64,000 nucleotides of DNA from Oculina patagonica. Its lineage: Eukaryota. Location: positions 38,502,001 to 38,566,000 of the forward strand of contig NC_135761.1 of the NCBI RefSeq assembly GCF_052425735.1, in the 5' to 3' direction. How positions within the stretch are numbered: the first letter of the stretch is position 1; each line of letters starts with the position of its first letter. A program made the translations under genes and the position numbers. Shown in pieces: positions 26,511 through 41,492 of the stretch. The notes beneath the pieces are model-generated. The model worked only from the letters and a program-made list of their open reading frames with translations, had not been told where the DNA came from and ran no database searches.

Positions 26511-28746
26511 AAGACTTGTTATTTTAAAATTTTAATTCAATTATGTGTTGTGTCATAATTGTCTCCTTTTTAACACCATAAGGAATTGGATCTCATGATC
26601 CGAGGGATCTCAGAAGGAAAATTGCAGAAGCCCGGTGCAGAAATTCAAGGGACCGTCTCTTACAACGAGCGAACGTTCCCTAAAGGTAAATTTATTTCAA
26701 AATGCAATCAAAAGTCTAAATAGAAATCACTTAAGTTTTCTACTTATATTTATACTTTCTTTCAGTAACCAAGATTAAGTGTTAAGTAAAGACGTTTCTC
26801 ACGAGATTAAACATTCTTCTCAAGAAAATTAAGGGACATGTCCTTTTTTGGGCCAATTATTTTCAAAATATCATTGAGCACCACCTTAAAACATCTGTGT
26901 TAAACATTTTTTTTTAAGCAGGCAGGTATTTATTAGGAAAGCAACAAAAGATTTATGCCAGGACTTTGTTAAACATCATATACTAGTACCTAGCAGTGAA
27001 ATGATGGCTGGGGGAGAGGGGGCATTAATTGAATTTCTTGAGCTTTTTGACATTTGCTTCCTTAAGTTTACTTCCAAAGTAATCATTTTCTTTTAAAATC
27101 CGTACATCTCCACTACAGGATTTGAAGAGTTCTTCTCACTTGCAACCATTAATTGCGTTTGTTTGTATTTTTAGCAGATGACACTGCCATAGAAGATCTA
27201 AGTGACAAATCAAAGTCCAGAAAAAGTGAGCTATTATCTTGTAGTAGCAGTGCAATTGCTTATCGAAGGTGGCTGAAACAAATCTAAATTCTTAGCGTTT
27301 TGGCTTTGCTTTAATTACAGGATTCCGATAGGCGGGTTTTTTAGCTTTAGCTAAAAAACAACTTTTGAGGTAAACTGATACTAATTAAGCCTCTCTTTTT
27401 TCTCCTGTAGTAAGATGTTTCAACTGCCGCGGAGAGGGGCATAAGGCCCGTAACTGCCCTTCTCCAAAAATAATAAGAAAAAATACCAAGAAGCCAAAGG
27501 AGCGAGTAGAAAGAATTGTCATAAATCACTACCATACGTATAAAGATAGGAGCTCGGCAAATTTTCATTGATCACGCGATTTTTTATTTCTTGTTTCCCT
27601 GTTTTATTTTTGTTTTTGAAGGAAAATAATTTGAAGCTGTCTTTTGCTTTCGAATGAAATTTTTTTGAAGTTGTCATGTCGCTTTTTATATTGGCTGAGC
27701 CTTTGTTGTTATTTGTAATTAAAACATCATTCTTAAACAATCGCGTGTTCTGTTTCTCGGTCACTAACCGGCATGTGGTGCTGTATGGGCTAAGTAACAG
27801 TATAAAGACTCCCTCTGCCCGCCCTTTTGCCTCCTACCCAGAGTCCCTACCAATGCTGGGGTCACGCTAACAGGAACTTTTTACCGTATTGTATTCTTTT
27901 TTAAGCCTCACCCACCCTATTGGAAACAAGTTTGTTCGATCTATTACCAAATCCTGGTCTAGAAAGACCTCACAGGGGTTTTCTAATCGAACAAAACTGT
28001 TAATTGGTTTCCAACAATAGAGAAATGTCTTGCTCGGCAAATTTTGGACAGATTTAAGAAAGATCAGGATTACAAAATGTTTCAAAACCTCAGACGGTGT
28101 ACACTTCTTTATCAAGAGCCTATCGTCCAAACTGAAGTGGCATTAACTGTCAAAATTCTTTATGTGCCATTGCATGTGATCACAGTGGAAGATACTCCTT
28201 GTGCATGTGATTGGTGTGAAAACGAGAAGAAGTATAAGCCCTTAGTGTTTAGATAAGCGTGAAATTTCAAGTTAGAATCCAGTTATTATTTTTCTTTTTT
28301 TTGTACTGCAGATAGTCATTTACCAGAAACGTAGCCACTCAGGGATGGGCAAGCTTCCAGGGCTTACCAGTATCAGCACAGGATGAATCTAATTAACCTG
28401 TTAGCCCACGTGCTAGAACTGGTAACCAGACAAGTAGGCAGGTCTTCAACTTCAATGTCGTGTTATTGGATTCCCGGAACCATTCCATCCCCAGGGGAAA
28501 TTTAAGGCAGCAGCCATGGAAGATCTGAGTGACAAATCAAAGTCCAGAAAAAGTGAGCTATTATCCTGTATTATAAAATGCTCCAGTTATTCCCAGCGCT
28601 ATGATTGGTCAATTTAAGTTCATTATAACTCCATAAAGCACTCTGCCTACGTCACGCACGTGCATTATAACTCAACATATGCACGCAAGCTACGTCATGG
28701 ATTTTTTTGCCGAGGAAAAAATTTGAGAACTAGCCTGTCCGCCATT

Positions 28747-29379
28747 ATGGCTGAACAATTTCCACGGTTTGAGATTGGGTTCGAATTCCTGAATACCAAA
28801 AAAAGTGACAGTGTTGAAGATTCCCCTAGTGAGGCACCTGTTGAAAAAAAGAAACGGTTTGCAGAACTAACTGAAGCGGAAAGAAACCGGCTTTTGGTGG
28901 AAACGCAAGAAAAAGCTAGGAAGAGCACGACAAATTGGGCTGTTAACGCTTTCAAAGGTAAAGAAACTCACAATAAATATAAGTTGAAGTGAACACGGAC
29001 TACAATATACATCCCAAACACTAAAACGTAAAACCGGTTTAATAAAGAAATAAAAAAATGACGAATAAAAGCATCTTACAGTTTTCCGTAAGAGAGTTTA
29101 CACCTGAGCTTGTTTACATTTTTGTCGACAGAAAAGCAACATTGCACTCGTTTATTCAATTAAATACATGTCTTCTGGCAGCTGTTGTGTATATCATTTC
29201 ACAGTCTTTTGAAATAATAATTAGTTAAAGACCGAGTTAAAACTATCTTTTTTTCTCAGAATGGAGTGCACAAAAAGTCCCTGTGCTGCCAAAACTAGAG
29301 GAGATGAGCGACGAACAACTTGACGACAGCTTGGCACAGTTTTATACAGAAGCACGAAGCAAAAAAGGAGAAGAGTACA
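28747..29379 (+). pseudogene. Crypton YR gene, 5' part (exon 28747-28957, intron 28958-29259, exon from 29260)
   Basis: MAEQFPRF...KRFAELTEAERNRLL...STTNWAVNAFK, then a GT..AG intron, then EWSAQK...LDDSLAQFYTEARSKKGEEY. Confidence 0.85.
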
Positions 29380-30343
29380 CTCACGTAAATTAAGGCATGG
29401 GTCATGACTAAAAAAATGCAAATTTTTAAACTGTTTATCCCTGCTTGGCAATGTAATAAAACAGTCTGTTCTGTTCCAGTAGTTTTGAAATGAAATGAAA
29501 CGTATGAAAAAGCGGTCATAAGTCTTAAATTTTGATTTGAATTATAGTGACTTTGCTACATTTCCAAGCGCAGAAATGAAGAAAATGCATTTCTTGGCAA
29601 GTTCTTCGCGTTAAAAACTTGCTGCAGTACACCTAAAGTGTTCCCATGTGGCCAAGTTTCTTCCTGCAAGGTTGTATACCGCCATTTTGAATTCATTATG
29701 CGGACCGCGTAATCGCCCCAGCATTTAGGTCTGGGTGCCAGCTTTTCTGTTGTCAAAGAGACGAACTGACCAATAGAATAAATGAATATGTAAAAGGCTT
29801 GGTTCCTTTTAATAAAATGGCGGACGAAGAAGCAAACTTCACGGCGATCTATGTACTTCTTTGCAAAATAATCAAAGGGTTGTTGACCGTTACTTTGTCA
29901 TGAAAAGATGTAGTTAAAACAATTATTTCTGCCACAAATAGAATCTTGTTAAAAAGGGGTATCTTCGTGTCTTCTAGATGTTTAAAGGTGAGAAATAAAT
30001 GCCTTCTTGATGTAAACAGGTTTGTTTTGTTTTTTTTGTTCCGAATTGTATTGCAAGCCATTGAGAGCCTTCTTTAGTTGTAATTTATGCCGGTTGGTGC
30101 TAGGCGCGTTATTTTGGCGCTAAAAACAAAATAAATTAAAACCATTGTCATGCTAATACAGCGAACAACAGCACTTCTGCAAAATAATCGTATGCACTTT
30201 ATAGAAAGATTGTAATTCTCCGAGGGTTTGCAAGAGGCTATTTCAAGTTAAGAGCGAGTTTAAGGTATATTAAGTATTATTTCAAGGAAATTATTCACAA
30301 AGCACTAATAACAAGAAAGCAAATTCAAGATTCGGCGCCTAAA

Positions 30344-33300
30344 ATGGCCTCCTACTTCGGATGTGGTTTTGCTCGAGTTGCAGCAAAATTAAGCTACCTG
30401 AAGCCCAATGGAAAGGTTGAGTATGATCAAGAACAGAGGTGCAGACAGTACTCGGGTATTTTTAAAGGAGAACACAAAAAACGCTTTGAAGTAGACCAAT
30501 ATTCGTTTAACAAGCGGTCCAAGAGTATTGTACTCCATTTTAAAAAATGGAAGACAGCCGAGAGGGAAAAATACATAGAGCACTTCAGTCCAAACAACTG
30601 GGAAAAGCTCACAGAACATGAAAAAAGGCAACATTGCCGTTCACAATGTAAAGCCTGTGATGTTCACCATTTCTCTATCCAATCTCTGTTTCCTTTGTGG
30701 GGAAACAAATCAAAGTCTGTTACAAATCAAAGTATTTACAAAAAAGTCAACAGCCGAGTCCTTAAAGAATCATCTGCTGTAAATGTGAAAGTAACAAAAA
30801 AGGCTATAAAAGCTGCCACAAAAGAAGTCTATGACAAAATTAACACTCCATTTGAAAAGACATTTGGCATAACTTTTGCTGTTGCTCAAACCAGTGTTCC
30901 TGAGCTAAATGTCCAGGTGAAAAAGTCGCATGCTGAGTTGAAACGAGAAAGGAGAAATAAATCCAGAGCTGACAAGAAGCACATCCAGAAGCAGTGGGCA
31001 ACAATGGATTGTGACACCATGCTTGGAACAAGGCAGACATACAGCCAACGTCAACAACAGCGGCTGTTACTTTCTTTTGAGACCAAACTTGATGCTGAGA
31101 ACAGGGCCAACAAAAGAGCACGCCTGGAAGAAGAAGGCCAGCGAAAAAAGAAAAGGCACTCTCCAAAGCCGGATCATCTTAACTTTGATAAGGATGGGCT
31201 CCTAGAAGAAGTAAATACAATGAAAGATGGAGAAATGGTTAGTAAACGTCAAGACAAATAATGTAGCCATACACCAAATACTCTATAATACATTGCTACT
31301 CCTCTTGAGTAACAATTCTCTAACTCCACTACATTTAATTCCTTTAAAATTAAAAAAAATCAACAAATGAATAATAAAATACAAATATTAAATTAACATA
31401 TACTGTACATTAGCTTCTCAATGTGTACCACTCCCAGACAACATAAACTGGTTGCTTAATTAACCAGTGATAAAACATAGCACTTATGTGAATAACATTT
31501 TCCTTTTCAGATTAATTTCTCTAATCTTGCTCGTAAATATGGCCTGATGGAAAAAAACAAAAAATGGAAATATGGTCGTCAAAGAGTTTCTAGAAAACAA
31601 GGGGGTGCAGTTGTCTAGATTTAACCACTTCAGAAGCGTTAAGCCAGCAGCCAGGAGAAAATTAAGACGAATGCAGGGTGGAGAGATTTCAGTCCCAGTC
31701 CAACAAACAAACAGTGAGATCAGAGAAACCTTAATGGTAAGTCAGGGAGAATTAAATAAAAAAATGAATGAATGGAAACGTTATTAAAATGTATTGATAC
31801 TTTCCTGTACAAATAAGTTGTAAACATACTAGGTAATATAAAATAAGCAAACAAAACAAGAAAGAATTTCAATCCTCACTAGAAAATATGGTACAGTAGC
31901 TGAAAAAATGCAAACTGATTTGTATATGCCTATCGATTTGTTATTTTTGTAGAGCAAAATTGAAAGTGGCGAGTACATTCTTGGTGAAATGATTGTTCCC
32001 CAAACAGTCAAGAAAGTCACCTTGACAAAAGAGGGAAAAATAAAGAAAGAAACATTTACAGTAACAGGCCGCAAGATTCCTCTTCTTGACATCAGAAAAA
32101 ATATGCTGAAAGAGCATGAGGAAATGGGTTTGATGCGAATAAGAAGTGATAGCGACTATGACTTCATGACAGAAGATGAAATCAGTTCCAGACTTAAGCA
32201 GTTGGGTGAGGATGAAGAGGAAGAAAGTGCATCCAATAGGAAAGAAAAACTGAAAGAAATTGAAAGAAAAAGGCACCTTATGGTCTGTAGTGACAATGCA
32301 ACTCTTCTAAATCATGGCCACATCCTACTCACAGTCAATGCTGTTTATGATGAGGCCCTTTACTTCACCAATGAAGAAATGAAAGGCATGGGTCAAGAGA
32401 ACGTTGATGTTGATGCTGGATGTGCAAGCTGCAGTGGAGATTCCAGAAAGTACAAACATCTTGCAGTTTCCCTCAACAGACCACACTTGAGCCTCCAAGA
32501 GCGCAAAAAGAAAGTTCTGCAAGGTCCTGCAGGTCGACAGAAAAGAAATGGTGGCATAAAACCCTTTAAAGACCTTCTTTTAGAGGAGCTGAAGAGGGAG
32601 TGCTCTGCCCGTGGACTACCTTGTGATGGTCAGAAGGATGAGCTGCAAGAGGTTCTCAAGGAAGAGCTTGTGGGATTCAACGAGTGCCTGTGATGATCTT
32701 CTTTGATCAATCAAAACATATGGCAGATCTTGGTTTAGGTAAGAATAGTGAATAGTGACCACATTATTTTCACAGGTGTGTATACACATGTATGTGTATA
32801 AATTAAATTACATGTAAGTTTCATGCAAGGCATATACAGACATTCTCATCAAACTAGGCAGGATCCTGAGAACAAAGATCAGCCTTTTATATACTTTAAG
32901 GAAAGAAGGACTATCAGAAATTTAAGTATTCATTTGTTAGTTGTTTTTTTTTTTTTCTTCACAAACTCTCAGCACAAATCATACACTGTCAACTATGAAC
33001 ACCTTGTTTTAATGAACACAAATGGTACATTTTCCCTGTTTTGTTTTGTGTGAAAAAAATTGACCAGGCTGGGTATAAAAATCATTGTTATCATCTTACA
33101 CAAAAATTAGTTTGACCTTACCACTCCTGCCGATTTTTTTTTACTCATGAGAGAAAAAAGTGAGAGAAACTAAGACTGTCAGCTAGACAGGGTGGTTAAA
33201 CACAATCTTATGCATTATATTTTAAACAGGAAATTATGAAGTCCTACCCACAGAGCCCCTCCATGACATAAAAGAACACATTGCCAATGTCCTGACAGAG

Positions 33301-35253
33301 TTGCCTTGTCACCTTGAAAAGGAAGAAAAGAAAGCACTTGAAGAAATCATAGAATATTCGTTGGGTGGAAAGGAGAAGAAAAGAGGTTGTGATTACAGAC
33401 TTGCAGCTGTTATAGTGGCTCAGTATTTAAGAGGTAAGAATCGTGTGCACACTGAGTCTCATAACATATAATACAGCTGTATTTACTTAATCCAGATCTG
33501 AAACATGAAATGGATGTTTCACTGAATTCCTACTTACATGTACATTACCCTGTTTATGAAACAACTGTTAACTCAATGTAACCTTGTTTATAATTACAAT
33601 GTAATAAGCTGTAATAGTAACAGTCTAATCATAACGCCAGTGTATTTAGAACTGTACAAGCAATATTTTAGCCTTGCAATGCTATTTAGCTATTCAAAAT
33701 TCACTGTTCTCTGCCTCTTCTTTGTAGGAAAAGTAAGACCTTTGGTACAGTTACTCCTGGATTCCCTGACAGAGCTAAGTAAACTTCTGTACATGCCAGC
33801 ACATTCAAGATGCCCCAAATTAGTTCTCCGCCTGCACAATCAAGCCTTCATACATGCCATGACCTGCAAGGAAATCTTTGGCGAGCCAAAAATTCTCACT
33901 GAGAGAAAATTTTATGGCAGATACTGGCATTCCCTTACTGCACATGCTGCGAAGCAAAGCAGAATTGTCTCTTTGAAGTCAACAAATACTGAAGAAGAAG
34001 AGAGACATTTTAATACACTTCAAGGTGTGACCAAGTTAACCAACAGGCGGCCAGGAGACATAATCACACCAAGTCTCATCCGCCTGCAGGCTGAGCAAAA
34101 GCTTGCAGAGAGCAAGCATGCAACCAGCAATCCAGTGAAAATGCAGGAATCAAAAATTTCCAAATACTACAATACCCTTCCACCACTCCCAAGCACAGTT
34201 ATTCCAAACCGATATATCATCAAACACCCGAAAGAATATCAGGCTCACCTGCAGGGTATCAGTGACTTTATTGCTTGTGGGGAAGGTGTATGGTGGCAGC
34301 AGATTTTGTCTGGAGTTGAATTCTTTGATGGTCCTAATGAAGCTAACAGCAGACCTCAGGGACCATTACTTCATCATTTCAGATCAAGCAACCTCCAGTT
34401 AGAGGAAGAGTACCTACAAGAGTGTTGGGATATGTGTCTAATTGATGAAAATATAACAATTCCTCACAGCATAATAAGAATCTACAACCAGAGGGGTGAC
34501 TGCACCAGAGTCACACGCACAAACTTCTTGTACAGATATGATGACAGTGATGAAGAACTAGGCAATGAAGTAGCTGAAGATGCTGAAACAGAATCTCTTG
34601 TAGTAGATGATGATGAAGATGCAGCAGAAGAGGTAACATTATTGGAAGAAGTTATCACTCCTGAGTTCAAAGATTTTTCTGGTGAGTACAGTGATGATGA
34701 AAATGATGAAGAAGAACTGCAACCTTTGTTCACATCACCATCTTTGTCTGCAGTAGCAAATAACAGTACATTAAAGAATTCTGAGCAAGACAAAAGTAGC
34801 ACTGATAATTCAAGTAGAAGACCAATTCAAAATTCAGCAACAAGCCAGCAAAGCAGAAAATCACTTTCAGATAACAGACCTAGCTCAGACAACTCACAAA
34901 GAAAAGAAATTCAAACAAAGCTGTGTAAAAATATAGCCAAAATAGTTGGCGAAACAGAAAATGTTTACAAATTGGACACTGCAAGACAAAACATGAAGCA
35001 ACATCCAACAAGCACCTTTCACACAAACAACTTCCAGAACCTTCTTGCACCAATGCAGACACAAATCCTGGCTCATCACACATCATTGAAGAAACAGCAC
35101 AAGGAATGGGAAAAGCAATACTTCCTTTAAAATGACTGCACTGAAGCGAGCTTAGAAGACCTTAAAACAGACAACGAGCAGTACTCAATATACAAAAAGT
35201 TAGTTTTGTGTGAAGAACTCTTCAAGCACTGGAAAATAACTGTCCATCTGTGA
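30344..35253 (+). pseudogene. Five-exon putative DDE transposase (RAG1/Transib/CMC-like core with SAP-like insertion and acidic tail), lightly decayed
   Basis: Exons 30344-31237, 31511-31736, 31953-32738, 33230-33433 and 33728-35253, all GT..AG and phase-compatible. Motifs: HCRSQCKAC, LMVCSDNATLLNHGH, GCASC, EELKRECSARGL..GQKDELQEVL, EPLHDIKEH, YWHSLTAH, NTEEEERHFN. Lesions: +1 frameshift near 31560, -1 frameshift near 32672, stop at 35128-35130, likely internal deletion near 32410. Confidence 0.75.
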
Positions 35254-35450
35254 TATCAGTGTGCGGTGTTGGTATGTTAGTTATAAAGCCAAGTAGTAAA
35301 TGCATCTCTTCATTATTCTTTCTTTAATAAGGCCTATGTACCCAAGATGCACATGAGAAAAACTGCTCAAGTTATGAAATCCAACAATTCAATTCTTCTG
35401 TTATAAATCATTCATCACTTTCCTTTCTTCTGTTATATGTAAATATATAC

Positions 35451-35763
35451 TAGTTATGCAACGCTTTCGAGTGGTATACTATGGAATATCCCACGAGTCA
35501 CTTGTATTTTCTCGGTATACACACGAGCCTTTAGGCGAGTGTGTATGCCAAGAAAATACAAGTGACAAGTGGGATATTCCATAGTATACCACGAGAAAGT
35601 GTTGTGTAACTATTTTATACCATGCCATAGAAAATACGCTTACTAAATTTCGTCAAGAATACAGTCGCAGCGCACTATGGGAAGGTTGGGTTGAATACCG
35701 TCAAATATACAACGGCTTTCCTGTATTCTGATTGGCTGCATTTTCTATGGCATGGTATAAAAT
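35451..35763. mobile_element. Double-hairpin palindromic non-autonomous element (Crypton-like MITE)
   Basis: Hairpin 1 at 35451-35612 (gtggtatactatggaatatcccac...gtgggatattccatagtataccac). Hairpin 2 at 35612-35763 (ttttataccatgccatagaaaat...attttctatggcatggtataaaa). Confidence 0.8.
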
Positions 35764-36357
35764 TACTTATAGGAAGTAAGTAAATAAAATGAACAGTTTA
35801 CTGCATGCTATTTACTCTAGCAGCCAGAAGAAAGAAAGAAGCATTTAGTAAAGCTTATATTCTCCTATAAATACCAGAAAGAAAAGGCCAAGTTAGTTAG
35901 GAGAACATTGAAGAAAATCAGTTTTGTTTCGAATTTGCATGCTTCGTGTATCCTTCTTACTCCCAGAGCAGAAACTGCTTTTCCGCTATTTTTACACAGA
36001 AAATCAGAACTTAAAGCCTACAAAGGCTTTAAATTATTGTTACTAACCTTACCTCAGTGAACTGAGTAAAAATAAACATATTTGTAAAGGCAAATGTTGA
36101 CAATCAAGCACTTTGTTTCTTCGTGTTTTCATTCGAAATCATTATAGTGACTGCCGGCTCTAGTAGTCGTTTCCACGGTTTCCACGTCCGTTTCCACAGA
36201 AACCAAAATTAAACCGCTGAAAAAGGCGATCGGCTCCCAAAGACGTTCTCTTTATTTGGCTTTCAAGACCTTATTTGGCACGAGATGCTTTTCCCGCCAA
36301 GACAAAAATTTGATGGTTGAAGGAGGGAAAGCTAAAATAATCAATATCAATTATAGC

Positions 36358-37582
36358 ATGGGTAAATTCAGAGATCATACTGTTGAGGAAATTCGTAGGC
36401 TTCGGAATGCGAGGCAGAAACGAAAGCGTCAACAAAGAACAGCACAAAGACTAGCCCTCGAACGAGCGCAGATTATGAAAGAGCGTGAACAGGAACGACG
36501 GATTGCTTCAGAACTACGAGAAACAGCGCGCAAATTTTGCAGAAAGTGGCGTGAAAAATGCCACGAAAATAATAAAATGAGACATCTCTTAGATCAATAT
36601 CGACTTCAGGTAAGGTTTTTAGCTTCTAGAGATATGCACCTTTCATACCAAAAATATTTCACCGAGTTGCAAATAGGTACCTGAATAACAGAAGTCACTG
36701 CACACACATCTACTTTAAAAACATATTTTAATGACAGTAAGCTTGCTTTGTAACATCAAGGCGTCCATCAATACATTTTAAAGTAATTGTTATTGTGTGA
36801 AACCTTTTTAACAGGGGCAAATCAATAAGCAAGGGGTTGCTGTGGAAAATAAAGTTAATAACATTAGTTTAAGAGAGCTTAGCACTAATGTTCAGCCATG
36901 CATCTCACTTGGAGAAGGTTCCTTTGGGAAGTGTTAATTGAAAAACTACAAGAGGATGGGTATTACTGTGGTCGAGAAACAAATGATCAATGGTTACATG
37001 CATGACATTATCAAAGAAGCACAAACAATGCAAGCTTTGGTGCACCCCAATATACCAACAATTCTTGATGTGCAAATTGAAGAAGAACCATATGCCATCA
37101 TCATGGAGTACTTAGGTGAGGCAAATTCCTCTTTCACAGTCCATGATCTCCTCAAAGAGACCAACAGCCTGGAGAAAAAGGACTGGGTCAAGATTTCTTA
37201 TAATGTTGCTGATGCCCTAAATCATGTACACAAAAAAGGTTTTCTTCATTGTGATTTGAAGGCTAATAATGTTGTTGTCTTCAAAAAGGAAGGGTTCTTG
37301 ATTGACTTCGGAAAAGCTTGTGCAATCACATCTCCACCAGCAAAAAAATACAAGTTCTCTTATCCCCATATTGCACCTGAAGTACTGAATGGTTCTCCGT
37401 GCAGTGTAAAAAGCGACATTTACTCGCTAGGAACAGTTCTGAAAAAAATTGGCTTGTCCCAGAATATTCAATGCATAACAGAGGTGGCCCAGACATGCCT
37501 AAATGACAGTCCAAAGCAGCGGCCAACACTAGTGGGAATACTAGCATCCCTTGTTTCACAAAATGATTTTCAATTAAATTAA
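36358..37582 (+). pseudogene. Two-exon Ser/Thr protein kinase (non-RD, HCD) with a basic coiled-coil N-terminus; transposon cargo; one in-frame stop
   Basis: Exon 1 36358-36609, intron to 36814, exon 2 from 36815. Motifs LGEGSFGKC, VVEK, IIKEA, HCDLKANN, DFG, IAPE, SDIYSLG. TAA at 36935-36937. Confidence 0.88.
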
Positions 37583-37914
37583 TACACTGCAGCTTTGTAA
37601 ACCAGCAAAACATTTTATTGACAATTATCAGAGTTGAAAACCCAAGTGTCACTCTCATTCCAGTGTAGAACTTTAGGTATTTTCTGAAAAACAAGATAGT
37701 ATTCAAGTTACCACAAAGAGCAATTACACGACTCTGATAATACCAATAGCAATGACAAACAATCTACTTCTATTGTTCTTTTTTAGGCAAAATGTGTAAT
37801 TCTTGTCAAATTATTCCACAATGTTTATTGCTTATCACACTATTTAACAATAATTTAGAAAAGAACTGATTTAGCTCCCAAATGGAAATTTAGTGCTTTC
37901 ATTGTTTAGAACTC

Positions 37915-38880
37915 TCCTCCCAATGATCACTTTCCTTTAATCTCACTACCTGCAGAAATATATGAAGACAGTCTGTGATAGAAAAAAAAAAAGATTTAAC
38001 ATTGAGTTAATGGCTTTAAGGTGGCTATGGTGGAGCTCTCCTGTTGTCAAGATGATTCGTCTTTTAACAACAGGCTGTCTGGATGTTTCGTCCTCTGGTA
38101 GTGTGCAAAACCTGCAGCCATTAATACATTTAGCTCATGACATGACATTTCCCATAAAAATCAATACAAAGTCTGCAGATCTTGAGAAAAAAGGAATTGA
38201 TAACCCCAAAAAGAGAAAATGTGTTGATAAATTATCGCCAAAAATATTCCTATTTGAAGTTATAAGACATTGAGTCCATATAGTCACAAATGGTAATTTT
38301 TTTTAAACGAATGACATCTTATAACTGAATAACAAGGTAGATCAGTTGTCAGCCAGTGAAACATTGATCAGCAGGAAGGGAATTTTTTAAGACATGACAG
38401 ATTAATATGGTGTTAGTGTGGTATTTTCTGAAAAATAAAAATTATATATATATATTAAGTCAATGGTAGTTCACTTCAAAACATGCAGAGTATGAATTTT
38501 CTTAGTGGAACCTTTGGAAGTTCTCAAAACCTTTCCCATTGATCACATTCCTTTAATCTCACAAACAGTAGATTTAGACATTTTTATTGAAAAAAAGAAG
38601 AAAAAAAGGCTTACTTCAAAAGACTGATTGCAAGGTGGCAAAGGTGGAGCTCTCCTGTTGTCAAGATGATTCGTCTTTTAACAACAGGCTGTCTGGATGT
38701 TTCGTCCTCTGGCAGTGTGCAAAACCTGCAGCCATTAATTTATTTGGCCCTCAAAATGATCTGCATGTTATGTTTCCCCCAAAGATCAATACAGAGTCTG
38801 AAGATATTGAGAATAAAGGAATTGGTCATAAAAAAAATGTGTTGATAAACTGTTATTAAAAATACTCTGTTATGAGACAT
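37915..38880. repeat. Imperfect local duplication (~615-bp spacing) inside the TIR element
   Basis: ggtggagctctcctgttgtcaagatgattcg...gcaaaacctgcagccattaat occurs at ~38029 and ~38643. Confidence 0.85.
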
Positions 38881-39758
38881 GTAGACAGAAGTCTACATCA
38901 CCAATATAGATCCAGTACAAAATTTGTCTAACGGATAACTAGGTAATGAGGACAACAGAATTGATCACCACAAAAATGGGGAAGCTGTGTTAATTAAGAA
39001 CAAATTTTAAATTTACATGTACTACTTTGGCCGTAAACAATCAATGAACTCTCGCAAAACAAGTTTCAAATCAGAAAATATAGAAATTAAATGAGCACAT
39101 CAATTGGAGTGTACAGCATAGAATGAAGAGTGTAATACATACACTGTAGTTGAATATATAGAGATATAATTGAGAGTAGGAAATACAGTATATCAGCTCT
39201 TGTAGTTATATGTGATAAATCAGCTTAGCCTTGCAGCCATTTCAAAAATAAAGAAAGATCAGAAAATTCTGTTTTGGTTTAAAAATTGTCCGAAGCTTAT
39301 TCGCCATCGCTTACATATGCTTTTATCGAGTAGATATCATCAGTTTATATATCGACTACCAAATAACTTTAAAAAGAAAGAGATAAGGAGTTTCAAACGC
39401 AAGCTGCCGAAGACTTTATAATTAAGCTTAATAGCTTTATACAAGGTTTATAGATCATATTTGAAAAATAACTTACCTTTATCACGTAACGCCATAACAG
39501 GGATTTCTACCAGTTAATCATCAAACGTAACAGATGCTCTTACTACATAACGCTTCTTATCCCTCCAGAATCGAATTCTGCATAAACAACGAACTGGATG
39601 AATTTGAAAAACATTGCTCGCATCGACCGCCATGTTTTTTCATTTTGATCTCGATCGGTCAACTCTCCCCAGGGTCTACTCGGCATAAAAATCCAAGATG
39701 GCGGCACCTTCGTAACCTGGCCAAAACAAAACTTGGCCCATGCCTTAATTTTCTTGAG

Positions 39759-40786
39759 CAGTAAATCGTCTCTAATTTCGTTCAGAAATGCAATAGAGAG
39801 GCATTTGAACAACCCACCTTACAAGAGAAGTTTGAAGCTGAATTCAGCTTCATTTTCAAGTTCCAACCGTATGCTGAACGCCAAAATCAAGAGCCTGAAA
39901 CTGCAAGGGAAGGAAAATGTGCAGCACAAAGAAGCCATCCCTATTGACGACTTGAAGAAATTGAAAGCTGGTCCTGTTTTGCGCCTTACAAATCCATGGT
40001 CTTTGCTGAGAAACGTGTGGTTTCATGTTGTCCTGTACTGGTGTAGGAGAGGTCGAGAGGGGCAGAGAAGTTTGAAGCCGACGAGTTTTGAATTTGCAGT
40101 GGATGAGCAAGGCAGGCGCTATGTCACTATGACCCACGACGAGACCAGCAAAAACCACCCTGGTGGACTTCAAGACCATTCCAGCTTCGAGAAGACGGCT
40201 CGTATGGACAAAACAGAGAGTTAGACCGACGGCTATCGAGCGCTGAGCTTGTACATCTCCAAGCTAAATCCGAAATGCGAAGCTCTTTTTCAGCAACCTC
40301 GGCGCGATTGGAAGGAATCCGCCACACACGACGTATAGTATGAATGGCGTCAACACCCTCGGAAACATGATGAAAGAAATCAGTACGGCAGCCAAGCTTT
40401 CCAAAGTTTACACAAACGACTGTGTTCGGGCGACAGCGATAACCTTGTGGTCAGAAGCCGGTTTGTCGGATCGACACATATGCCACATTTTGGGCCACAG
40501 AAACCCGAACAGTCTCCAGCATTATAATTCCCGCCCGTCGTCTACCCAGCTCAGAAAATGCAGTGATGTTTTGTCCAGTGCATTACAAGACGACAACCAG
40601 AAGTCTTCACGAAGTGATAATCCTGTTAGTGAGCTCCAAACAGCAGTGCCAGGCACAGTGGTGGAAACACACAACCGATTGTCCACCACTGCGATTCACA
40701 GCAAAATGCTTGGCGGCATGTTTAATTCTTGCACCGTCGGTTCGGTTCAAATTAATTTTTATCCGCCTGAACGCAAAAATCAGTGA
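39759..40786 (+). pseudogene. Crypton tyrosine recombinase (DUF3504-like), 3' part
   Basis: SKSSLISFRNAIERHL...WCRRGREGQRSLK...SKNHPGG...GVNTLGNMMKEIS...YTNDCVRAT...GHRNPNSLQHY. The R-K-(H)xxR-H-Y catalytic set is present, with H mutated to D. Stop at 40222 and a frameshift. Confidence 0.9.
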
Positions 40787-41031
40787 ACTGCTTCAGGTTT
40801 CTCAAGATTTTCAAGATTCTTGTAGCTTCAATAACTTCTTCAGAATCGTTTTTGACGTTAAAAAACGTTTGTTTCTTACCACAAAAGGAACCGTTTTACT
40901 TTTCATTCAGCATTTAAGCCAATAGAAAGACGCACGTACAATGCAAGGAGAAATTTGATGTCGATGAATTAAAATTCGAAATTGTTTTCTCATTTAAATG
41001 TCGTTATTAGAGTGTGGCCGTTTACATTTCA

Positions 41032-41229
41032 TAAAAGAAATAAAAAAAACTTGCTCCTCGTGCATTGTTGAGTTATATGAGCACTCGGGAATTTTAAGAA
41101 CACTCGAGAAGTGCGAGAAGCACTCGGCTGCGCCTCGTGCTTCTCTATGCACTTCTCTCGTGTTCTTAAATATTCCCGCGTGCTTATATAACTCAACAAT
41201 GCCATCGGGCGCATTTTTTATTTCTTTAG
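41032..41229. repeat. ~200-bp imperfect palindrome at the Crypton 3' end
   Basis: aaagaaataaaaaa...cattgttgagttata...[cggctgcgcc]...tataactcaacaatg...ttttttatttcttta. Confidence 0.9.
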
Positions 41230-41377
41230 TACTGTCCTGATGTATCTGAAAATATTTCTTTAGAAAATATTTGAGACTCTGGCCGTATAGTAGACTTGCA
41301 GTTGACTAGGGGGACTCAGGAGACAGGAGTTTTGACAGCCCTCAATGATGCCTTCCTTTTCCTTAGTGGAGACAACA

Positions 41378-41492
41378 AGGATGAGAATGGTGATCTTATT
41401 CCTAAATTGATGGGAAAAGATCCAGCTCCAGAAAGCCTTTTAGAACTGATTGTATGCTGGTGTAAGAAGGGATGCAACACAAGATGTGCTTC
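41378..41492 (+). pseudogene. Second short Academ-type Cys-rich C-terminal fragment
   Basis: DENGDLIPKLMGKDPAPESLLELIVCWCKKGCNTRC parallels the 5060-5250 peptide. Confidence 0.65.

Follow-up and report, generated by a model that had tools for sequence, protein, structure and literature searches.

What kind of mobile element carries both a transposase gene and a protein kinase gene between a single pair of terminal inverted repeats (TIRs), and does the kinase serve the element or simply travel with it? The question is raised by a stretch of Oculina patagonica DNA of 64,000 nt (the window, to whose full length all positions refer), in which an element of 10.4 kb occupies positions 29380-39758. 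The structural and evolutionary account developed here, which we regard as probably correct, is that this element is a decayed cut-and-paste transposon of the CMC-Transib (CMCT) lineage, and that its kinase has been kept by selection for a long time.

Element ends and target-site duplication

The element begins with a left TIR, CTCACGTAAATTAAGGCATGGGTCA (29380-29404, plus strand), and ends with a right TIR whose reverse complement is CTCAAGAAAATTAAGGCATGGGCCA (39734-39758, minus strand), both placed by sequence and by alignment of termini. The two repeats are complementary at 22 of 25 bp, and their 15-nt core, AAATTAAGGCATGGG, occurs at two places only in the window, these being the two ends. 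A CA dinucleotide stands directly outside each of them (29378-29379 and 39759-39760), and in silico excision of the element together with one CA leaves a single open reading frame (ORF) of 200 codons in the host sequence (...KKGEEYSKSSLISFRN...), which runs through the join as ...EEYSKSSL... and confirms that excision restores the frame of a Crypton, as had been proposed from the sequence alone.

The uninterrupted site is also present in public reads, the runs with element or flank sequence being labelled coral metagenome and coded organisms A and B. In a DNA run (X3), three contigs match the left flank as far as 29379, where GTAAATCGTCTC takes over, the right flank after a single CA, and one contig from run X6 shows the same junction with one substitution, the left flank to 29376 being followed by GCAGTAAATCGTCTC. 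Uninterrupted Crypton contigs in the public coral runs read ...GAGTACA|GTAAATCG. Because these empty-site contigs hold a single CA, the boundaries are exact and the insertion duplicated 2 bp; the limits, the ~25-bp TIRs and the CA flanks assigned by the sequence-only reading hold to the base.

Fourteen loci were retrieved, and the ten cnidarian ones, reached via the transposase or via the kinase, are discussed here. Four loci are complete elements with termini 5'-CTCAGGTAAATTAAGG, the same as in the window copy, and they provide the other TIR-bounded copies whose existence had been set as a check: L001 (4893-16532, 11.6 kb, flanks CA/CA), L002 (5543-12597, about 7 kb), L006 (4609-12392, 7.8 kb, flanks TA/TA), and the kinase-bearing L011 (1312-14293, 13 kb, flanks AA/AA). 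The limits of L011 were set by a TIR motif search instead of by comparison with L012, which gave no element limits because homology extends past the element; an inverted-repeat search for TIRs in L003 found none that was convincing. CTCA..TGAG termini are present in 10 of the 10 aligned ends; across these ends the ATTAAGG core and, within CTCAGG, the C, T, A, and G stay constant, unlike the flanking dinucleotide, and the dinucleotides duplicated in the window copy and the matched copies all end in A. Two alternative boundaries, one with CA inside the element and one with a CA..TG end two bases in, are ruled out, since the flanking dinucleotide differs between copies and CTCA..TGAG is constant. 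The target-site duplication (TSD) is 2 bp long and variable in sequence, and the empty-site contigs and the matching flanks of other copies establish that this TIR-bounded element moves by cut-and-paste with a 2-bp stagger. In the clade of L011 the transposase is only about 45% identical to that of the window copy, yet the ends are the same, and the ends are therefore old.

Two loci are internal-deletion derivatives: L005 (9416-11518), in which the left subterminal region is joined directly to exon 5 of the transposase gene, and L010 (6584-10744), which keeps exons 1-2 and the kinase and has lost exons 3-5.

The transposase and its relatives

The five-exon transposase gene described by the sequence-only reading is real, and all of its exons lie on the plus strand. 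Exon 1 (30344-31237) encodes an N-terminal region with no Pfam domain, has a putative donor site, and shows 61-85% amino acid identity to exon 1 of L001, L002, and L006; exon 2 (31511-31736) was placed by homology. The first catalytic Asp motif (32280-32303), a CxxC (32421-32432), and a SAP domain (about 32583-32651) are found in exon 3 (31953-32738), the EPLHDI motif (33253-33270) in exon 4 (33230-33433), and HSLTAH (33928-33945), the TEEEER region of the catalytic Glu (33988-34005), and an acidic, Ser-rich tail in exon 5 (33728-35253). Introns 3 (32739-33229) and 4 (33434-33727) have GT..AG borders and appear as joints in contigs of the RNA-labelled run X6 on both sides of exon 4, and introns 1 and 2 are putative, being placed by homology and splice signals.

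For the last exon, the protein collection yields 70 close relatives, and a full HMMER scan 1549 relatives. Full-length relatives measure 900-1270 aa, and the named ones, from Branchiostoma lanceolatum, Argopecten irradians, Ptychodera flava, and Actinostola, are called "uncharacterized". The family is found in cnidarians (including corals), amphioxus, acorn worms, and a scallop, and structure matches suggest that it may occur in further bivalves. Two members, P0092 (Branchiostoma belcheri KAI8516476.1) and AFDB A0A8B6E4I5, are labelled AP-5 complex subunit zeta-1, which is probably an annotation or gene-fusion error. In the family alignment, the motifs follow one another in the order WxD; GDxPAxQFEAGxQKGGxYxCxxC; a SAP-like helix pair; YEVxPxEPLHDI; YYHSLTxH; and NAExEERxF, such that the second Asp is separated from the Glu by a CxxC...HxxxxH module, with the SAP domain inserted after the CxxC.

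A Pfam scan of the window exons finds the SAP domain only; no Pfam transposase family is matched by the window exons or by 14 full-length relatives at E up to 10, and phmmer and hmmsearch runs against Protein Data Bank (PDB) sequences return SAP domains only. The core of the relative P0336 was modelled with AlphaFold (pLDDT 91.4, pTM 0.91, the predicted local and global quality scores), and in our own reading of the secondary-structure string of this model, WxD would lie on the first long RNase-H strand and GD just after the fourth strand, which are the positions of the catalytic Asp residues. When the model was compared with solved structures by Foldseek, the top 43 matches were RAG1 chains (best E 6e-10), followed by amphioxus BbRAGL and the Helicoverpa Transib, with Hermes only at E 0.03. 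Realignment gave Z 18.0 for RAG1 over 431 residues (RAG1 498-1006, spanning preR, RNH, ZnC2, ZnH2, and CTD), Z 14.6 for BbRAGL, Z 14.3 for HzTransib, and Z 10.4 for the P element transposase; no CACTA/Mirage/Chapaev-type transposase was among the solved-structure matches.

These matches might suggest that the enzyme belongs to the Transib/RAG1 group itself, or is its sister, with a non-canonical TSD and ends, the kinase taking the place of a RAG2-like partner. The spacing from the second Asp to the CxxC and from the HxxxxH to the Glu is also RAG1-like. However, predicted structures fit other groups equally well: in the ESM Atlas, the Transposase_21/DUF4218 (CACTA/EnSpm) cluster reaches template-modelling (TM) scores of 0.52-0.58, Plavaka 0.56, and RAG1 0.54, and language-model neighbours are mostly Transposase_21, with DUF1258, Plavaka, and RAG1 besides and one DUF1258 cluster at 0.88. 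In the 14 members, neither the RAG1 nor the DUF1258/Transposase_21 models of Pfam match (E up to 10 for RAG1), a PDB search with the family profile brings up neither RAG1 nor BbRAGL nor HzTransib chains, and HzTransib scores below RAG1. The DxPA...CxxC motif, moreover, is typical of CMC transposases too. As to the TSD, 3-bp and TA duplications are described inside the Transib clade (2026 preprint), so that 2 bp is no bar to Transib and TSD length alone cannot decide between a CMC and a Transib affinity. The kinase, for its part, is missing from an apparently intact copy and from deuterostome relatives, and is not an obligate partner. Membership in Transib/RAG1 is accordingly unlikely. The label RAG1/Transib-like, given to the enzyme at the outset, survives for the shared fold and for the order D..D..CxxC..HxxxxH..E, and fails as a specific assignment.

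Since its fit to predicted CACTA/EnSpm and Plavaka structures is no worse than that to RAG1, the enzyme is placed instead as a separate CMCT lineage: it is a DDE transposase with an RNase-H core, and the lineage has no Pfam model. CMCT elements are characterized by a TSD of 2 to 5 bp and, in most cases, 5'-CA..TG-3' termini (PMC12730594). The family shares with this clade a DDE transposase in which C(2)C and H(4)H follow the second Asp and precede the Glu (GDxPA...YxCxxC, then HxxxxH, then ExxE in the family alignments), a TSD within that range (2 bp, namely CA, CA, TA, and AA in four copies, together with the empty-site contigs), and a fold that matches both RAG1 and Transposase_21/Plavaka models; it differs in the lack of a Pfam-level match, in its CTCA..TGAG ends, in the SAP domain after the CxxC, and in the kinase gene. 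With Transib/RAG1, including amphioxus ProtoRAG, it has in common the best solved-structure match—a fold shared equally with CMC models—and catalytic and zinc-binding residues in the same order and at the same spacing, whereas its TSD is 2 bp and not 5 bp, its CTCAGG ends are not CAC heptamer-like, no RAG2-like partner is found, and sequence similarity is not detectable. The 2-bp TSD is shared with Mirage (CMC) and with ESTA. Unlike Mirage, the family gives no match to DUF1258/Transposase_21, models with which Mirage-like proteins are associated in the Atlas clusters. ESTA has a TA TSD and a transposase that matches RAG1 by HHpred (PMC12730594), and differs in being fungal and in carrying TET/JBP; it is likened here by description.

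A kinase gene kept in the element

Downstream of the transposase, in the same orientation, lies the two-exon kinase gene that the sequence-only reading had reported, and both the Pkinase match and the gene model show it to be real. Exon 1 (36313-36676, plus strand) encodes a basic, coiled-coil-like leader that is conserved in L003, L004, L007, and L014. Exon 2 (36834-37582, plus strand) encodes the kinase domain (Pkinase 1.5e-30, 106.9 bits against a cut-off of 31.7), with the glycine loop GEGSFGKC, VVEK (36968-36982), HCDLKANN (37247-37270), DFG (37304-37312), and APE (37373-37381). Across 13 members of the kinase family (38-84% identity), the Lys of VVEK, the helix-C Glu, HCD, the Asn, DFG, and APE are invariant, and the product is predicted to be a conventional eukaryotic protein kinase of the non-RD type, TKL/TK-like. 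The family comprises about 60 clusters at 38-84% identity, after which a large score gap leads to ordinary kinases; the nearest solved structures are CTR1, ABL, and STE20-type kinases at about 1e-17. A by-eye idea that the leader is a bZIP was dropped, and Pfam gave nothing for it. One protein, P0277, stands alone between the element kinase family and ordinary kinases; it is 44% identical to the element kinase and is filed under a Candidatus Aminicenantes metagenome-assembled genome on a 9.1-Mb contig, and may be a mis-binned eukaryotic sequence.

The kinase is linked to the transposase repeatedly. Transposase sequence lies upstream of the kinase on the same strand at six of the eight kinase loci: all five exons in the window, L003, and L011, and part of the gene in L012 (exons 2-5), L007 (exon 5), and L010 (exons 1-2). 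In a tree of the exon-5 core, kinase-bearing elements occur in both cnidarian clades, which are about 45% identical to each other, and L001, L002, and L006, which have no kinase, form a nested group next to that of the window copy at a fork with support 81/80.

Such recurrence bears on whether the kinase is a captured host gene that travels as a passenger without benefit to the element. DNA transposons do capture host fragments, kinase-less elements with intact ends exist, and the kinases of L007 and L004, which are recent copies in one assembly, differ neutrally, with a ratio of nonsynonymous to synonymous substitution (dN/dS) of 2.2 at dS 0.015. However, the same kinase family with the same leader exon occupies the same position and orientation in the two distant clades, and kinase and transposase identities to the window copy fall together (84/74% for L007, 51/45% for L011, and 46/47% for L003). 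Furthermore, the catalytic residues are all invariant, dN/dS between lineages is about 0.2 for the kinase (0.19-0.25; 0.05-0.12 for the transposase), and the large score gap sets the family apart from cellular kinases. A passenger is therefore improbable.

The opposite possibility, that the kinase is required for transposition as half of an obligate two-protein machine, would account for the conserved order, orientation, and selection. It is contradicted by L001, in which the five transposase exons are open, the CA/CA flanks are perfect, and the 3' part contains no kinase or other ORF. L001 being apparently intact in this state, the kinase is not needed for the cut-and-paste reaction itself. 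In addition, the amphioxus and acorn-worm loci, two deuterostome relatives, have no kinase within 10 kb. An obligate machine is thus very improbable.

Judged from sequence comparison, the kinase is instead an accessory, recurrent, and selected component of the element, neither a one-off insertion nor essential. The idea of a multi-gene system pairing a transposase with its own kinase accordingly stands as far as the kinase is recurrent and selected; it does not stand as an obligatory pairing, given L001 and the amphioxus and acorn-worm loci, nor as a working system in the window. The same mixed outcome holds for the retention of both genes in copies with different 2-bp TSDs, as L011 (AA/AA) has both and L001 (CA/CA) and L006 (TA/TA) have no kinase. 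The simplest history would be a single acquisition in the cnidarian ancestor of the element, upkeep by selection, and later loss in one branch.

These features suggest the following mechanism. The element inserted into a Crypton-like element, duplicating 2 bp; its transposase would bind the TIRs, cut, and reinsert with a 2-bp stagger, and the SAP insertion could add a DNA contact. A cnidarian branch of the lineage probably gained a second gene downstream on the same strand, for a non-RD kinase with a basic coiled-coil leader; this gene has diverged in step with the transposase under purifying selection and was probably lost later in one subclade. The kinase could act as a dispensable helper that raises the success or transmission of the element, and it probably phosphorylates the transposase, with its acidic, Ser-rich tail, or else host repair, silencing, or signalling factors; the choice of any particular target among these is tentative.

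Several observations weigh against this account. The termini are not the CA..TG of most CMCT elements, and the flanks of L002 are discordant (TA/CA). The CMCT placement, like the description of the lineage as unnamed, was reached with Pfam, PDB, and structure libraries only. At L004 and L014 the kinase, the leader, and shared downstream sequence are present and no transposase lies within 10 kb upstream. The loss of the kinase in L001, L002, and L006 hangs on the 81/80 fork, and the role of the kinase is one that we infer. Finally, the label "RNA" of run X6 is a tool's guess.

Other transposons provide precedents for a second gene. Rust-fungus IS3EU elements carry an alpha-kinase gene (PMC12730594). 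Like those alpha-kinases, TET/JBP in TET/JBP transposons, and RAG2 in RAG-like transposons, the kinase described here is a conserved second enzyme gene that lies inside the TIRs and is inherited with the transposase; it differs in that its product is a conventional eukaryotic protein kinase, that its carriers are animal elements of another superfamily, and that it lies on the transposase strand. This transposase family is not described in the literature searched, with Repbase Reports outside the search, and neither CMC/Transib-type elements nor animal DNA transposons are reported there to carry a conventional kinase. Accessory genes long kept by DNA transposons are rare, and RAG2, the Harbinger Myb-like protein, and TET/JBP have informed the study of transposition control or host manipulation; a selected element-borne kinase in animals would add such a case, and one open to bench tests. 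The transposase family would be a well-modelled, SAP-bearing addition to the small group that shares the RAG1 architecture, and its presence in amphioxus and hemichordates is relevant to the diversification of that architecture ahead of the origin of V(D)J recombination. A bolder proposal is that the family is an unnamed superfamily-level branch between CMC and Transib/RAG1, widespread in marine invertebrates, whose cnidarian kinase controls transposition or disarms a host response, in which case no earlier conventional protein kinase would be known to serve an animal transposon as a working gene; this is rather doubtful.

Decay of the window copy and surrounding sequence

The sequence-only reading took the window copy for a working system and missed its breakage. 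Exon 3 is shorter than in L001, L002, and L006 by 213 bp (71 codons): an in-frame deletion at 32410/32413 has taken out the conserved GDxPAxQFEAGxQKGG block and, with it, the second catalytic Asp. The deleted segment is retained in contigs from three DNA runs ('...TTTGAGGCTGGGGAACAGAAAGGTGGAC' before 32413), so that these corals do possess copies with it. In the window copy, the motif of the first catalytic Asp has changed from WHD to CSD. A 1-bp deletion follows 32669, where all four runs have an extra G; beyond it the window frame runs into stops, and the shifted frame, GIQRVPVM...GLG, joins exon 4. In exon 2, an extra A within an A-run near 31551 shifts the frame relative to the contigs of runs X1 and X4, and at the 3' end an in-frame stop (35128-35130) removes the last 41 codons of the transposase, homology to other copies continuing to 35253. 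In the kinase, the glycine loop runs straight into an in-frame TAA (36935-36937), at a position occupied by Phe in L007 and L004. These lesions leave the window copy dead: neither protein can be made from it, and it could move only with enzyme supplied by intact sisters.

The spacer between transposase and kinase is variable and does not align with that of the L007 copy. It contains a near-perfect palindrome (35444-35619) of two 87-nt arms (85%), which looks like a small foldback or miniature inverted-repeat transposable element (MITE) insertion, and a 24-nt perfect inverted repeat (35612-35763) adjoins it. Downstream of the kinase, 37918-39150 is a tandem duplication whose two units, each about 615 bp, are 85-91% alike, and the same duplication is found downstream of the kinase in L004 (11039-12101), a kinase-bearing copy; it may be a subterminal repeat structure and not a gene. 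A third gene on the minus strand, suggested as possible by the sequence-only reading, was rejected, as the region is this tandem duplication, without a convincing ORF, and the only minus-strand ORFs overlap the kinase in antisense or the TIR.

The element lies within a host element observed over 28300-29379 and 39761-41400. Its left flank gives a weak QRICH1-domain match and its downstream ORF has an HR...Y recombinase-like tail, and on these two features the host is Crypton-like. Uninterrupted Crypton copies are present in run X6, guessed by a tool to be RNA, and the host Crypton may therefore be transcribed. At another locus, L011, the left end of the 13-kb kinase-bearing element lies about 200 bp beyond a DNA_pol_B_2 gene (Polinton/Maverick-type polymerase) at 1-1116.

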